From Podarcis filfolensis (lineage: Eukaryota), in assembly GCA_964270895.1 (NCBI GenBank), contig OZ185437.1: a stretch of DNA of 64,000 bases; one strand, written 5' to 3'. Of this stretch, positions 28,148 to 60,654 are shown piece by piece. The notes under the pieces were generated by a model, which ran no database searches, was not told the DNA's origin, and worked only from the letters and a program-made list of their open reading frames with translations. A program made the position numbers and the translations under genes. Position 1 is the stretch's first letter. Each line of letters opens with the position of its first letter.

Positions 28148-29419
28148 TTAATGATAAGCTTTTTTTGCTGCTCTATCAAGAAATATTTATAAAGCAGACA
28201 AAGATCATAATAACTTCCATGGTTCTCAGTCTACACTAGCTACAATAGAGTTGCAGATATTATGAAGGGAAAATCCTTACAGTAACTGGATTTTTAAATT
28301 TGCTTTAATGTCCTATTCTATGGTACTGAAAATCTGATGCACACTTGTATGCTATGGTCTAGTTGTCTGCATTTGTGAAACTAAATTTCTTGTCAACAGG
28401 CCTGCAAATCAAATATCAGTCCATAAATAATAAAATACTTCATTTTGTAGAAAGCTTATGATTGAAACAGAATACCTTGAATAATAACTATGATCCCTGC
28501 ATTAAGAGCACTATTTGGGATTCTTTCCTATCCTGCTACACTACCTGAACACCATCCTTTTGTTCGCACAGCCCCCTGCAGCATGCGACATTTCTTCACA
28601 CTCCACATTCCTCCAATAATACATTTTGGATTCTGTGCCTCAGTTCTATTATCCTCCAGGCCCTGTCTATAAGATGCTCTTATTCTGTTACAGAATATGA
28701 TGATATTGCGTCTCACCATGATGAGAAGGTTGGGTGCAAGAAAGGTGGTAGTTTGTTAGGTGTTTTTTTTTTAAGTCTCAGCATTTCTATTCTGAATCAC
28801 ATCATTTTAGCTATTTCTCCTCTACCTGACCCCTCGGTTAACACAAGTCTTTCTTGTAACAGTGCATTTGTTATTCATTAACTACTGAAATGTTATAGCT
28901 GTGTACAACGACAAATATTTTACAGAAAAAGATATGAGATATCTTGCAAACAATGCAAGAACATTAGCATGTAAAGAAAATGTAAGCAATTCTTTTGGCG
29001 AACAACTTCTGAATGGGCCGTAACTGGCAATTGCAAAATCATATAAGTGTCTTGAAACAACACACATCAGTGTAAATGTCCTTTCTGTAAAACCAGCAAA
29101 AAAAGCACAAATAATAAGCTGAACCACACATCCCACACCAACATACGACTCTCCATTCACTAAGAACAGTAAGAGAAAGTGAAAGGCATACCCCAGGTTT
29201 TAAAAGGTTTGAATACATGAACTTGAAAACTGGCTGAATTCTCAAGTGCTCAATTCTAAACTAGAAAGAAAGCATAACACTTGCCTACAGGGAGATTGCA
29301 CGCTCTGATTCATGAGTCAACCAATGTGGCACCTGGAAGCACCCACAGAGGCCTCCCCTGCCACCTGCAGCATCCCCTCCCTACTGCTGAAATTTGGCTT
29401 GAAAGAATATGCTGCTCTA

Positions 29420-29938
29420 TGATGATGCTGGGAACAACTGCTGATCTGAATTGTCTGCTTTCAGCATAACTTTAGTTGTATCTTCATGGCCATCAAAGAA
29501 AATGCAGTGAATTTTGCCCATCTAACAAAGAACATCAAATTCCTGAGCCAGGGATTTCAGAACTTTTTCTTAGGCCCTCTTGACTGCAAGTCTCTTTTCT
29601 TCAGTGATCAAGCTGGCATCCATAAAGACAGCTGTGGCAAGCAGGCCAATACCATATCTGATGCTCTGCATACCAACATTATGCATTTCTATTGTGTTGC
29701 ACTCTGCCTTTTTATCAGAAGTGGAAGGTGTATTTGGCTTTTCTAATGTCAATTCATAACTTCCACCATTTCCATCTTGGTCATCATCTATGTGTTATTC
29801 ATTTTCATCAGCACAGAAAATTATTTCATTTGATGGTATTGAATCATCTAATCTACTTCTATGCTTATATTCAACAAGCCTTCTCTCATCTTCTTGCTGC
29901 TTCCACTTTTTAACTTGTTTGTTATGCTCAAGCATATG
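29420..29938 (-). pseudogene. Fossil DNA transposase fragment, hAT superfamily (hATm-like)
   Basis: One frame of about 173 codons with 3 internal stops: ...NTIEMHNVGMQSIRYGIGLLATAVFMDASLITEEKRLAVKRA*EKVLKSLAQEFDVLC*MGKIHCIFFDGHEDTTKVMLKADNSDQQLFP. Family assignment is from recalled motifs (RYG, FDGR.D.T), not from a search. Confidence 0.72.
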
Positions 29939-30092
29939 TAATACACTTGTGATTACTAGATAATCATTTTAATGATTATTATGCAATTTTACACACATTG
30001 TTTAAAAAAAGACAAGTTTTAAATTACTGGAAATTCCACAAAATGTTAAAAAGTCAGTATTTGTTTGCAAAGTACAAATCAAAACTAAATTA

Positions 30093-30328
30093 CAGTTGTA
30101 CCTTGGTTCTCGAACAGCTTAGTTGCCGAACAAATCAGCTCCCGTATGCCACAAACCAAGAAGTAAGTGTTCTGGTTTGCAAATGTTTTTCAGAAGCCGA
30201 ACATCTGATGCGGCTTCTGCTTAAGTGCAGGAAGCTCCTGCAGCCAATCAGAAGCCACGCCTTGGTTTTTGAATGGTTTTGGGAGTCCAACAGACTCCCG
30301 GAACGGATTAAGTTTGAGAACCAAGGTA
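30093..30328. mobile_element. Tc1/mariner-like MITE, right TIR clipped
   Basis: TA|CAGTTGTACCTTGGTTCTCGAAC...TTTGAGAACCAAGGTA; body resembles 10432-10620. Confidence 0.82.
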
Positions 30329-31173
30329 TATTTATTTAACCAAAATATCTTTTGAATTCCCAACTCATGTTACAACTTTTTAGCAACCCTCATTTTTTGA
30401 AATTTAAAGTTGAAAAATTCAGCATACCCTATTATGAGAACCTACAATTTTATTCTCTTATACTACTTGAAGCTGCATCCCTATGTACACTTACAAGGGG
30501 GTAACTCCCAATGACTTGCCTCTAATTAAATATGCATTGGATTGGCCTGCATGTTTATTCCAAGTGTGAGATAGTATAATCCCAAATCAAACACCACTGC
30601 TATTGGTTTTTCTGTGTTAGATAACATGGCTTGCAGTCAAGCGGTGGGAACTAGCCCTGGATGTTTACAGGGAAATAAATGCATTATCAAGTGGTACTAC
30701 TCACAACACTCCAGCAATTTAGTTTATATTGTGAAGGCAAATATCATGTTTTTATTCCTATGCTTTAACCATCTTTAACCAACATTGTGAAACAAACTCA
30801 GAAAAGCCTTCCAAGACAAATATGCTACTTGACATGACATCATTTAAAGGACAAAATAGGGTAATGCAATTTAATAGCATGAACAGGATAAAGTTATTTG
30901 ATTTACCAATAAATCCTGGAACTAGTTATGCTGCCAGAAGAAGTGTTATTGGATTTAAAATAGTTTATCTTATTAAATCAGCATAAGCTATAAATACAAA
31001 CTTCAGTGTATGGCTCCAGCAGGACAATTTACCCACTGAAATAGCATGTTTCTTAAGTCTCTAAAAGCAGGACACACTGAATTGTGATGCTTAACATCTG
31101 CAGAAGAGCCTTGGATCAGAGTTTTAAGTATGCCATGCCATTGCATTCTCTCTTATATATATCTATATCTATA

Positions 31174-45649: not shown

Positions 45650-46077
45650 CTCGAGACAAGACATAAGATTCAAGCCAACACAAGAAAAAGCTGAGCTTCA
45701 GATAAGATCGGAGAGCTGATGTAGCCTATTTAAATCATCATCCCGTGAGCTCGAAGAAAACCAGAAGCGCTTAAACTATTTTGAATGAAACGTGTCTTTT
45801 CCCCATTAGAAGTTCCTCCTCACGTCAAAAGCCCCCCTCCTCCTCCTCCTCACACAGGACCGTGCCCGACAACGACAACAATGAAATTATTGCAGGAAAG
45901 AATGGGAGGGAGGGTCGCCAAGGTGGCGGAGAGAGTACCCAAGAAGAACACAAGACCCAGCCACACAAGAGCGAGAGGGTGACTTTTCGGGATCGTAGGG
46001 AAGGAAGTTAATTTCTGTATTATCATTGTTATTATTATTTGCGGGAGGGGGGAAGCTGCTTTGAAGGAGTCACCCAC

Positions 46078-46719
46078 CTCTTTGATCTTCTCCCTTTTCT
46101 TCCGGATGGCGGGGTCGGTCGGTTCCCCTCCCACGGCCCCGACGGGTTTGCGGAACGGCAAGTCCGGCAGCCCGGCGGCCCCCGCCTCCCTCCTGCCCAA
46201 CTTGTCCTGCAGCAGAAACTTCGCCTTGTCCTGGTGGATGTCCCTGCGGATCTCGTCGGGCAGCTTCTGGAGGGTTTCTTTCGCCTCCCGCAAAGCTCGC
46301 TCGTGGTCCTCGCGGATCTTGGCCAAGTTCTCCGCGGCTTCCTCTGCAACAGCGGCGGCGGCGGCCCCATAGCCGCTGCTACTACTCCCGGCTCCGGGCG
46401 GCTGCGGCGGGCGCTGGTGTTCCCCGTGCGCCGGGGGCGGCGGCGGCTGCTGCTGCTGGAGGTTGCTGCTGGAGTGGAAGAAGACGCCGCTGAGCAGCTT
46501 GGGGGAGTCCGGCAGGAAGAAGATGGCCCCGAAGCAGAGCGTGATGAAGGCGCTGAAGACCAGCAGAAGCACGAACTTCTCCGTCAGGCGGAACGCGCCG
46601 CTGGGGCCGGGGGCTTTCCTGCCTCCGGGCCCGCCCAAGGGACCTCCGCCCAGAGGGCCGCCCAGGGCGCCCGGGCCGGCGGGGCTGCCGAAGAGCGGCA
46701 ACAGGCTGACGGCGGGCAT
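46078..46719 (-). CDS. MAN1A1: MAN1A1 coding exon 1 (642 nt, 214 codons): cytosolic tail, type II transmembrane anchor, stem region
   Basis: ATG at 46719-46717. Translation MPAVSLLPLF...RLTEKFVLLLVFSAFITLCFGAIFFLPDS...HERALREAKETLQKLP...KREKIKE matches the MAN1A1 N-terminus I recall rather than MAN1A2 or MAN1C1. Donor GAG|GTGGGT at 46077. Confidence 0.97.
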
Positions 46720-47337
46720 CGCGCGGGGCTCCGGGACTCAGCGCCCCCTGTAGGCCGGCGGCGCCCGCGGGGCAACCCGTCGTCACCAAACCGCCACAGC
46801 CGCGGCGGGCGCCGTCACAGCCAGAGCGGGCCGGCGGGACCAGCCCGCGCTTCCTGCCCTCGGCTGCCGGCGGCAACTTTCTTCGTCCTCTTCGGCGGCA
46901 GGAAGTTTTGCTCGGCTGCCGCCGCCTCCTCCGCGAGTTCTCCCTTCACGGGAAGCGGCTGCCTTTGGCCGACGAGGGAAGTTCGGACCCGAGGTGCGTT
47001 TGCGGCTCTGTCAGCTCCTGCCGCCGCCGCCCCCTCGGCTGGTGCGGCTGCTGTCGCCGCTGCCCATTTGACGCCGGCGCTGCCGCCTGCCCTCAGGTAT
47101 CCGGCGAGAGGAAGGCGGAGCGGCGCTGCTGTTATCGCTGTGGCCGCCCAGCCAATTCATAGGAATGATGACACTTCGCTCCCTCTCTCCCCTCCTCCCT
47201 CCCTCCCTCTCTCCCCTCAGAGGCGGCGGCGCCTGGCACTCGGAAGCGGAGGACAACTGCTTACTCGAGCACGGAGCGCGGAACTGAGGCAGCCGCGAGA
47301 GGGAGGCCCCTGCTTCTCGGCGAAGGAGCGCGCTGGA

Positions 47338-47437
47338 CCAATCACAGAGTAGGCGGGGCTGGGTGGTGGCGGGCGAGAGGAGGAGGCGGTTACGGGAAGA
47401 GAAGGGGCGGGGCATTCCAAAGAGCGAGGGGCGGGGC
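47338..47437. promoter_or_regulatory. Core promoter motifs: CCAAT box (47338-47342) and two perfect Sp1 GC boxes GGGGCGGGGC (47404-47413, 47428-47437)
   Basis: Exact motif matches in the CpG island, about 620-720 nt upstream of the ATG; function inferred. Confidence 0.65.
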
Positions 47438-48332
47438 GTGTGGATTTGTGGGTTTTTTTACAGTTGAGAAACAGAGCGTCCCGGGCGGAGGGGGGCGTTG
47501 CTCGTGCAGCGCGCGTGCGGGGTGCCAGAACCGCTGGTTGCAAACGTGCGCGGGCGGGCACGCGCTCACACTCACACACTCACTCGCTCGCTCACACACA
47601 GATGACGACTTGGCTTGTTATGCATCGTCGTCGGCTTCCCCTGCTCGGGCGTACGTGACGCCACACAGGAGGTTAGGCGAAATCCTCGTGCCTGGCCCAC
47701 CTCCCGGACTAGGATTCATTAACCCCGGGTCCGTTCACGCATGCACACGTGCAGTAGTACGAAGTTGCGTTTCTTGATCAATCAGTGGGGCTTTGATTCT
47801 AGCGCGAGATTGCAGCATGACGTGCACCGTCCCGTCCCCCCACTACAAAACTCAAGTTTTAACACTTGTCGATAAAGGATCTTCCTGTGGACGGCCGGCT
47901 GCGTGCATTTTTTTTTTGTTTACTTATTATGTGGCGACAGTTTATGGGAAGGAAGGAATTGAGGCCGAAATCTGACACCGGCTGTAAATATACAGACCGA
48001 TCGATACATTGCTAGGCAATAACGGGCGCGCTGGGCTTCCTGTGCCGCTTGCTTGCTTGACTAAGCGAGACTGGGTAAACGTGCACAGCCCCCCACCGAA
48101 CTTTTCTGGAATTAAACAATGCATTGGCTGAAGTGACCAACTGGGTTTTTCCACCACAATAATCTAGCGGGGCTTCCAGACTCTGCTGCCCATGCACAAA
48201 AGTTTTGCACGGTGTCCTGAGGACGACCTGATCAAATGGAACTGTCAACTTTTCCCTTTTCTTGCGAGGAATCCTATTTGGAATAAGGGAATTTCTCTTT
48301 AAAAAGGGGGAAAGTTGACAGCTATGACTCCG

Positions 48333-58820: not shown

Positions 58821-60152
58821 CTTGCTACATTTCCCACTGACTTGCAACAAATTAGACAAGATAAATACAATAAATCCATAGGTTACTCTACTGACAATAC
58901 GACTGCCGTCAGTGGAACATGGAGTGAAGTAATATTTGGCAATACACTTTATCTCATTCAGCTCCTGCCTCAAATCTGCTCCAGAGTATTGAACAAGTCA
59001 TATATGGCCATTGATCATTTATATTTATTTATTTTTCTGCCATACCAGATAATCTCCCATTGATTGAAATTGTATTTCCATTTGCTCATCATATACTAGA
59101 GATGTGATAATTTAGAGCTGGCTGAAATTTACATGAAGCTTTTTTGGTAGAATTTGTTGATAACCATAACAAGCTATAGTATTAGGAGATTGGAAATGGA
59201 ATTATTAGAGGATTCTGAATTCCAAAATCTTGTTTGAGATAGGAAGGCTATTGATATGGAAATGTTGTGTTAAGGAATGGAAACTGCCAAGCAGCATCCT
59301 TAATATTCCAGAGCACAATCCACTAAGAACTAGGATTACATATACTCAACATAATTCCCACTGGAACGGGTGGAAAATATGTGGCAACAGTCCTTATGGA
59401 GCGTACCTCTTTCCCTTGCTAGAAAGATTTGTTTTCAGAATTAGGGAATCTGACTTGAGCTGTCAGTAATGAACATAATTCACTATGGAATCTGAAACAA
59501 TGTCCATGCTAGAGAAATTGAGGCATTCCCCAGTTGTAGATGAAATAAAATATTCACCACAGAAAATATAATGAAAAGGCTGCATAATTTTACATAATCA
59601 TAGCACTAAAAATAATACAACTTGCTTAATTCACGAAGTTTTGGTATTTCTTCTACATGAACATTGCCATTTAGTTGCAAATTCTTCTTCTTTTTTTTGC
59701 AGCGTAATTTTTATTGCCTTGTCTAGGTAAATGTCTCTTGAGCCTGAAGCTGGCCAGTAGCTCACATCTCTCACTTGCAACATCTGTGCAACCAGACAGA
59801 AACAATGAGTCCTGCTAAATAATTCCCGTGGGGATAGGAGACAACCACATCAAACTTTGATTGTATGAAATATTTACCCAGCATGTTCTTTCTATAGAGG
59901 AGCAAAGAGGTTCTTGTTAAGTTAATACCCTTTGTGTGTGTGTGTGGGGGGGGGAATGATTTACTGATTTCAGAAGGCTTCCTGTACAAATGTTTGTTGA
60001 TCACACTGACAACCTTTCCAGTATGTAATGTTGACTGCCTATGTCCCTTTATCACCTTTCGCCAGACCTGGGTCCAGTAATGGAACAAGGCACTGAACAG
60101 GATAACCCCAAGGTGGGCCTCTTGTTCAGCGATGGAGGCTGCACTGGAGCCA

Positions 60153-60153
<1 letters not shown>

Positions 60154-60191
<38 letters not shown>

Positions 60192-60654
60192 GTCGTGTTC
60201 GACTCTTCGTGACCCCATGGACCAGAGCACGCCAGGCACTTCTGTCTTCCACTGCCTCCCGCAGTTTGGTCAAACTCACGCTGGTAGCTTCGAGAACACT
60301 GTCCAACCATCTCTTCCTCTGTCGTCCCCTTCTCCTTGTGATCTCAACCTCTCCCAGCATCAGGGTTTTTTCCAGGGAGTCTTCTCTTCTCTTGAGGAGG
60401 CCAAAGTATTGGAGCCTCAGCTTCAGGACCTGTCCTTCCAGTGAGCACTCAGGGCTGATTTCCTTAAGAATGAATAGGTTTGATCTTCTTGCAGTCCATG
60501 GGACTCTCAAGAGTCTCCTCCAGCACCATAATTCAAAAGCATCAATTCTTCGGTGATCAGCCTTCTTTATGGTCCAGCTCTCACTTCCATACATCACTAC
60601 TGGGAAAACCATAGCTTTTACTATATGGACCTTTGTTGGCAAGGTGATGTCTCT
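60154..60654 (-). mobile_element. 5'-truncated RTE-BovB LINE with (CAA)12 tail
   Basis: Translation PTKVHIVKAMVFPVVMYGSESWTIKKADHRRIDAFELWCWRRLLRVPWTARRSN...WRALVHGVTKSRTRL is the BovB ORF C-terminus; TSD ACT(G/T)GAGCCAT (60143-60153, 60655-60665). Confidence 0.95.

Follow-up and report, generated by a model that had tools for sequence, protein, structure and literature searches.

A probable hATm transposon fossil in an intron of a lizard mannosidase IA-like gene

Does a short open reading frame inside an intron of the lizard Podarcis filfolensis descend from a transposase and, if so, what kind of element did it belong to, how much of that element is left, and by what route did it reach the lizard lineage? 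We addressed these questions in a 64,000-nucleotide stretch of contig OZ185437.1, hereafter called the window, for which a preliminary description had proposed one minus-strand frame of about 173 codons with three stops and no frameshift. The 60-aa ORF at 29570-29752 (-) is present and is the middle part of a longer minus-strand frame, which from 29937 to 29420 contains exactly three stops (29797-29795, 29572-29570 and 29524-29522) and no frameshifts, and its text reads as quoted. Past a frameshift near 29436, frame-2 translation of the neighbouring frame gives '..PSIIIEQH..' at 29438-29405 (-), so that the shifted continuation read earlier as ..IIIEQH.. was also found.

A bare 173-codon frame would on its own be no more than chance, and its ancestry is proven by homology instead. 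Windows of 173 codons with three stops or fewer are common, numbering about 28 per Markov shuffle of the window against 79 in the real window. Pfam searches with four pieces of the window returned nothing meaningful, a PDB sequence search with a 74-aa piece (29573-29794, -) returned nothing relevant, an Atlas search with the same piece gave no usable lead, and Rfam had no match over 27-33 kb of the window. The frequency of such frames in shuffled windows and the empty Pfam and PDB searches with pieces both speak for an open frame that arose by chance in AT-rich intron DNA, devoid of coding ancestry, and it is against this reading that the homology weighs.

When the 74-aa piece was compared by phmmer with 1.84 billion representative proteins, 12 hits were obtained, ten of which are short related ORF fragments that carry the same text at 51-71% identity; one of the ten is a 'hypothetical protein' of Podarcis lilfordi. 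The remaining two hits are long repetitive proteins and were taken as spurious. The family was extended toward its C-terminus by word search from one fragment (P0005), and the fragment alignment was then used to pull DNA from metagenome contigs, yielding several loci. One of them, L001, is a 5885-bp locus with an uninterrupted 794-aa ORF from the first ATG (L001:2183-4564). In a tblastn search of the window, this ORF found one match only, residues 191-372 on 29935-29423, with 61.7% identity over 183 aa (E = 1.4e-56), and blastn aligned window positions 29937-29405 with L001 2751-3318 at 77.4% identity over 570 nt. The protein and DNA matches make the coding ancestry of the frame certain. With an E-value of this order to an intact 794-aa ORF, 77% DNA identity over 570 nt and ten related fragments, the chance reading is already refuted, and we leave it virtually no probability.

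The family to which the remnant belongs is large. A word search with L001 residues 230-794 retrieved 398 proteins, the best-scoring of which are mostly 770-800 aa long, and precomputed Pfam domains were absent from all 120 hits listed among them. Named relatives come from Hydra vulgaris, the crab Chionoecetes opilio and the teleosts Aldrovandia affinis and Chaenocephalus aceratus; a 90% cluster also holds a protein of the frog Mantella aurantiaca, and this Mantella cluster is 73% identical to L001. A search of viral contigs found no relative. Pfam gave nothing meaningful on fragments P0001-P0024, on the full L001 ORF or on 34 aligned family members, and a PDB sequence search with the full L001 ORF gave nothing relevant. 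The full element measures about 3.3 kb in locus L001, its 3' end not being locatable on the contig. Beside the 794-aa ORF, the same contig carries a TOP3B-like exon (L001:661-768; 32 of 36 residues identical to human), which, on its sequence, shows an animal host for L001 without saying which animal.

Two further metagenome loci, L002 and L004, contain complete non-autonomous copies. Alignment with these and with L001 resolves the window copy into the following parts, the MITE being a later guest that lies outside the hATm element proper:

30409-30431, minus strand: 5' terminus TAGGGTATGCTGAATTTTTCAAC, the remnant of a terminal inverted repeat, which can be aligned to L001, L002 and L004 at their 5' ends.
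30329-30431, minus strand: 5' subterminal non-coding region, matched by blastn to L001, L002 and L004.
30093-30328, no strand assigned: nested, younger Tc1/mariner-like MITE, recognised by its inverted arms, its depth and its interruption of the collinearity with L001.
30010-30092, minus strand: continuation of the leader past the MITE, a weak blastn match to L001 element positions 111-196.
29938-30009, minus strand: internal-deletion junction, the gap between two collinear blastn matches to L001.
29420-29937, minus strand: transposase remnant corresponding to L001 residues 191-372 (tblastn, 61.7%, E = 1.4e-56).
29405-29438, minus strand: frame-shifted tail PSIIIEQH, equivalent to the family motif PSIIKEEHYSV (frame-2 translation; reaching L001 3318).

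At 30431, the terminus TAGGGTATGCTG matches the 5' end of L001 with 78% identity over 118 nt and can also be aligned with the inverted terminal repeats that bound L002 and L004 (blastn; window 30435-30319 on L001 1693-1809, 78%, E = 8e-20; 72-75% on L002 and L004). Summed contig depth drops from about 1764 in the bin 30374-30440 to 5.6 in the bin 30441-30507, the baseline just outside the terminus, and by the same measure the genome contains some hundreds of copies of the 5' subterminal stretch. The possible terminus that had been suggested at 30431-30409 is a true element end, as judged from the alignment with the L001 5' end, the depth drop and the hATm signature described below.

Inward of this end, the leader resumes directly past the MITE in a collinear match of 70.9% over 86 nt, at an E-value of 0.065. 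The junction follows, at which the copy lacks about 865 bp of full-element sequence (L001 ~1886-2750, including codons 1-190), and L001 residues 1-190 have no tblastn match anywhere in the 64-kb window. The remnant that follows spans a basic helix, an acidic linker, a three-helix pre-catalytic region and the first beta-strand with FFDGH, its secondary structure being assigned from the model of L001. Within FFDGH the first Asp is retained and the Arg is changed to His; the CGT>CAT transition proposed for this change is seen directly on comparing GGC CGT GAA in L001 with GGC CAT GAA in the window. Relative to L001, the remnant has three stops, one frameshift and in-frame losses including TAAIT and VDHNK, and it is substituted at 98 of the 504 coding positions aligned (~19%). 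Homology ceases at 29405, so the element is truncated there, and contig depth is back to baseline below ~29435. A pattern search allowing three mismatches and blastn with three full elements recovered neither a 3' terminus nor any further piece in the 64 kb; the window copy lacks all that follows the EEH motif, namely D430, C459..H462, E747 and the 3' end. The view of the locus as a decayed, internally deleted copy thus stands, with codons 1-190 gone and three stops, and 3' truncation has to be added to it.

The nested MITE has inverted arms at 30099-30115 and 30312-30328 (17 nt, 94% complementary), and its end at 30091-30098 reads TA followed by CAGTTG. Loose ends at 30091 and 30328 occur in about 100 contigs per sequencing run, with sharp boundaries, and in each of the four species labels the MITE reaches a summed contig depth 1e4-1e5 times baseline. 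Inverted arms, sharp boundaries and huge depth together bear out the younger MITE that had been placed at 30093-30328. Other copies of this MITE seem to have about seven extra terminal letters (CCACTGT) past 30328, which are absent here.

The hATm element is not the only copy of its kind in the genome. The depth of its coding part, counted at 88% likeness or more, is 2-20 times baseline and that of the 5' terminus about 300 times, and this raised depth points to further copies and short derivatives. In addition, contigs in four runs join ~29999 to ~30327 with 22-28 other letters between. These joints indicate that other copies link the 5' terminus to the sequence below 29999 and do so without the MITE and without 30000-30092; they are probably a short derivative subfamily.

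These features bear on whether the remnant could instead be a processed pseudogene, or a piece of a transposase-derived host gene (a domesticated hAT gene). Such an origin would agree with the intact L001 ORF, which lacks a recognisable 3' terminus, and some family members might indeed be domesticated. The window copy, however, still has the 5' terminus and leader of the element itself, arranged collinearly with those of full elements; that terminus is repeated hundreds of times, and the copy has no poly(A) tail and no intron-loss signature. We therefore consider descent through a host gene highly improbable, and treat the remnant as a piece of a transposon.

Assignment of this transposon to a family begins with its ends. 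The inverted termini of L002 and L004 are TAGGGTGTGTCAATT and AAATGACACACCCTA, 15 nt long, and the two elements run from TAGGGTGTGTCA to TGACACACCCTA, which matches the published hATm signature. The end in the window, TAGGGTATG, is one transition off TAGGGTG, and the L001 end is TAGGGCATG. Terminal inverted repeats of hAT elements start with 5'-YARNG, and TAGGG is found at this place in the window copy, L001, L002 and L004 alike. The two non-autonomous copies (L002:658-3485 and L004:1105-3388) are 93.9% identical to each other and have a common 290-bp internal deletion and perfect hATm termini. Their flanking 8-mers match at zero of eight positions in L002 and one of eight in L004, the best shifted comparison giving five of eight in both, on short-read metagenome contigs that may be chimeric; the window copy, being one-ended, offers no pair of flanks for an 8-bp duplication.

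The elements called hATm have 5'-TAGGGTG and CACCCTA-3' ends and 8-9 bp duplications, form a separate clade and have been proposed as a fourth hAT family, with hATm-N entries in Repbase (Zhang et al., 2018, Mob DNA 9:19, PMC6004678). The label hATm, as we use it, rests on the terminal signature described there (PMC6004678). The terminal signature is identical, and the full-length relative found here has a single long transposase ORF. The published hosts are only invertebrates and viruses, for example Hydra, the leech Helobdella and wasps with bracoviruses (PMC6004678). This host range overlaps with that of the present family, which has relatives in Hydra vulgaris, in arthropods and possibly in an annelid, and it differs in that the copy described here belongs to a lizard and further relatives to a frog and to teleosts. 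A further difference is the PF05699 domain, reported in hATm-6 (PMC6004678) and matched by 0 of the 34 members of the family analysed here.

Conservation across the family was examined in an alignment of 34 sequences (A4). Four motifs named in the preliminary description as typical of such transposases are all conserved in it, as RYG..R.TA, H.KV.RA, FDGRKD.TKVM and KEEHYSV; F349 and H377 do not vary at all in the alignment, and D350 hardly varies. Farther toward the C-terminus lie GGDSTNVNTG, C.LHTNELPLRHL and QS.ER.VK, the last of which we take to resemble the hAT 'S.ER.FS' block. The putative catalytic residues would be D350 (in FDGR), D430 (in GGDSTN), the C..H pair (in C.LHTNELPLRHL) and E747 (in QS.ER). 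The aligned ranges suggest that D350, D430 and E747 correspond to Hermes D180, D248 and E572. The idea that the D of FDG is the first catalytic Asp fits the model, which puts it on the first RNase H-like strand at about the place of Hermes D180, as far as aligned ranges can tell. Nearer the N-terminus, at about residues 120-160 of the L001 ORF, there is a near-invariant cluster of cysteines (C129, C131, C136, C141, C155 and C157), probably a zinc-binding DNA-binding module, which Pfam does not recognise as BED.

An AlphaFold model of the L001 transposase built from A4 has a mean pLDDT of 84. It is ordered as three strands, a helix, a fourth strand leading to D430, a fifth strand, the C..H helix, a long all-helical insert and the E747 helix, and the predicted secondary structure of the family thus fits the hAT plan. 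A hAT-type RNase H-like core split by an all-alpha insertion is present in the L001 model, of which the window copy retains only the first strand. The top Foldseek hits are to Hermes, with probabilities of 0.99-1.00. In VIA-align, the Hermes structures 4d1q, 6dwz, 6dww, 8sjd and 8edg gave Z-scores of 14.1-15.2 over 338-352 residues, placing model residues 304-781 on Hermes 133-609, and 2bw3 gave 11.9 over 334 residues; lower scores were obtained with retroviral integrases (about 10.8, core only), ISCth4 (10.7, 268 residues), RAG1 (8.0, 316 residues), the P element (8.0, 335 residues) and Transib (7.8, 314 residues).

Hermes, a transposase of the Ac/hobo group of hAT from Musca domestica (2bw3, 4d1q, 6dwz, 8edg), is accordingly the best structural match to the L001 model. 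The two have in common an RNase H-like core with an all-helical insertion and a compatible spacing of D, D and E, and differ in that sequence identity is only 10-11% and that the family has an N-terminal Cys-rich cluster, without a recognised BED finger. PF05699, the hAT dimerisation domain, was matched by none of the 34 family members at E <= 1; the Hermes fold match nevertheless covers the C-terminal helices. A family profile run against PDB sequences did not recover Hermes. With no PF05699 match and Hermes not found by profile, membership in hAT rests on fold and termini, not on sequence likeness.

The same observations leave room for another DDE superfamily with a C/DxxH motif, such as P, Mutator-like or Kolobok. 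Foldseek places Hermes, the P element and ISCth4 together at the top with similar E-values (4e-4 for Hermes, 5e-4 for the P element), structural neighbours in the Atlas include Mutator-like transposases at a TM of about 0.5, and the missing PF05699 match, like the fact that no 8-bp duplication was seen at L002 and L004, would agree with a placement outside hAT. Full structural alignment separates the candidates: Hermes reaches a Z-score of 15.2, clearly above the P element (8.0) and ISCth4 (10.7), and its alignment extends across the all-helical insertion domain to the C-terminus. The TAGGGTG/CACCCTA ends, moreover, are the published hATm termini (PMC6004678). We hold a different superfamily to be very unlikely, and the earlier reading of the remnant as an hATm-like transposase is supported by its conserved motifs, its Hermes-like fold and its TAGGGTG...CACCCTA termini.

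The host is a GH47 mannosidase IA-like gene lying on the same strand as the element, whose exons were searched for one by one. The gene's second coding exon (35464-35366) and its third (28123-28010) flank the element, in agreement with the placement in 'MAN1A1 intron 2' given previously. The first coding exon of the gene is an ORF at 45850-46719 (-), within a G+C-rich stretch (45850-47600) that is open in many frames and is presumably the promoter CpG island. Elsewhere in the window, a 196-aa ORF at 60052-60642 (-), followed by an Asn run, has no Pfam match. We presume from its text ..VMYGSESWTIKKADHRRIDAFELWCWRRLLRVPWTARRSN.. that it is the tail of a LINE ORF2.

At each of its junctions the hATm element is spanned by contigs of four species labels (A-D), which show few differences; those of label D differ by about 1-3%. 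The insertion is common to these four closely related species labels and is thus older than their split. Relative to L001, the element itself has decayed by 16-18% at the first two codon positions, about ten times the label-D difference, which indicates that the insertion is old.

Taken together, we conclude with high confidence that 29405-30431 (-), within intron 2 of a MAN1A1-like gene, is an inactive fragment left by an hATm-family DNA transposon (hAT superfamily). An hATm element with termini TAGGGTG...CACCCTA, a transposase of about 794 aa and a Hermes-like RNase H core inserted into mannosidase intron 2 in the same orientation as the gene. An internal deletion would then have removed codons 1-190 of this copy, and a truncation everything past the EEH motif, the 3' end included; the Tc1-like MITE in the leader probably landed there later. 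The copy also gathered its three stops, one frameshift, in-frame deletions and ~19% substitutions. Owing to this decay and truncation, the window copy cannot encode an enzyme and, having a single end, cannot be mobilised. The missing catalytic residues, the three stops and the frameshift exclude activity of this copy and not its membership in the family. No present function is indicated for it.

How the lizard lineage obtained hATm is a separate question, and its answer would add to this explanation. We lean slightly toward horizontal acquisition, from or through an invertebrate, over vertical descent from early vertebrates. L001, the closest full-length relative, is 77-78% identical at the DNA level even in the non-coding terminus. 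The three codon positions differ between the window copy and L001 to a nearly equal extent (17.9, 16.1 and 24.4%), a pattern which suggests mostly neutral decay of a dead lizard copy and hence an active parent close to L001. Around L001, L002 and L004, the flanking DNA has an invertebrate-like CpG content (observed/expected 0.75, against 0.21 in the lizard window), and one contig in the L001 90% cluster was assigned to the bin 'Candidatus Nephrothrix', a symbiont of earthworm nephridia. L001 probably comes from an invertebrate host, and the published hosts of hATm are invertebrates (PMC6004678).

In a tree of 49 sequences, in which stops in the window fossil were replaced by X, the fossil and the Podarcis lilfordi fragment form a pair (SH-aLRT 82), and these two lizard sequences group with L001 and P0025-P0027 (93), inside a supported clade with the Mantella-linked cluster (95). 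The family also appears prone to transfer, as two teleosts and a crab fall in one tight clade. This clade (P0070, P0089, P0065, P0036 and P0047) unites a deep-sea halosaur, an Antarctic icefish and the snow crab with end branches of 0.08-0.18, and looks like horizontal transfer among marine animals.

Against acquisition from an invertebrate, CpG content and the metagenome bin are circumstantial indications of the L001 host, and the relatives in a frog (the Mantella cluster, 73% to L001) and in teleosts would allow a long vertebrate history. The conditional suggestion that the remnant might mark a transfer into lizards therefore gains circumstantial backing from the closeness of L001, the CpG content, the Nephrothrix bin and the tree, and falls short of proof. 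More specifically, lacertids may have received their hATm lineage from a soil invertebrate such as an earthworm, through prey or a shared parasite, a tentative proposal that we regard as doubtful on balance.

Fossil hAT and other DNA transposons of squamates have arrived by horizontal transfer, SPIN being one example. As in those cases, the window contains a decayed, intronic non-autonomous copy whose nearest relatives occur in distant taxa. SPIN, in contrast, belongs to another hAT family, and transfer of the lineage seen here is plausible only.

The window copy itself matters little, being one dead intronic fragment of a transposon from a known family, and the question of transfer is the sole part worth following. 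What the locus adds is that hATm, published from invertebrates and polydnaviruses, has left fossils in lizards too, with relatives in a frog and in teleosts. At least 398 family proteins were retrieved, many of them near full length (~770-800 aa) and without Pfam cover, and such uncovered ORFs are called 'hypothetical proteins', as in records from Podarcis lilfordi, Hydra, the crab and the fishes. The lizard fossil and the intact element on invertebrate-like contigs form a candidate pair for a test of cross-phylum transfer, and an origin of the earthworm type, if true, would extend hATm to a dated transfer from invertebrate to reptile.
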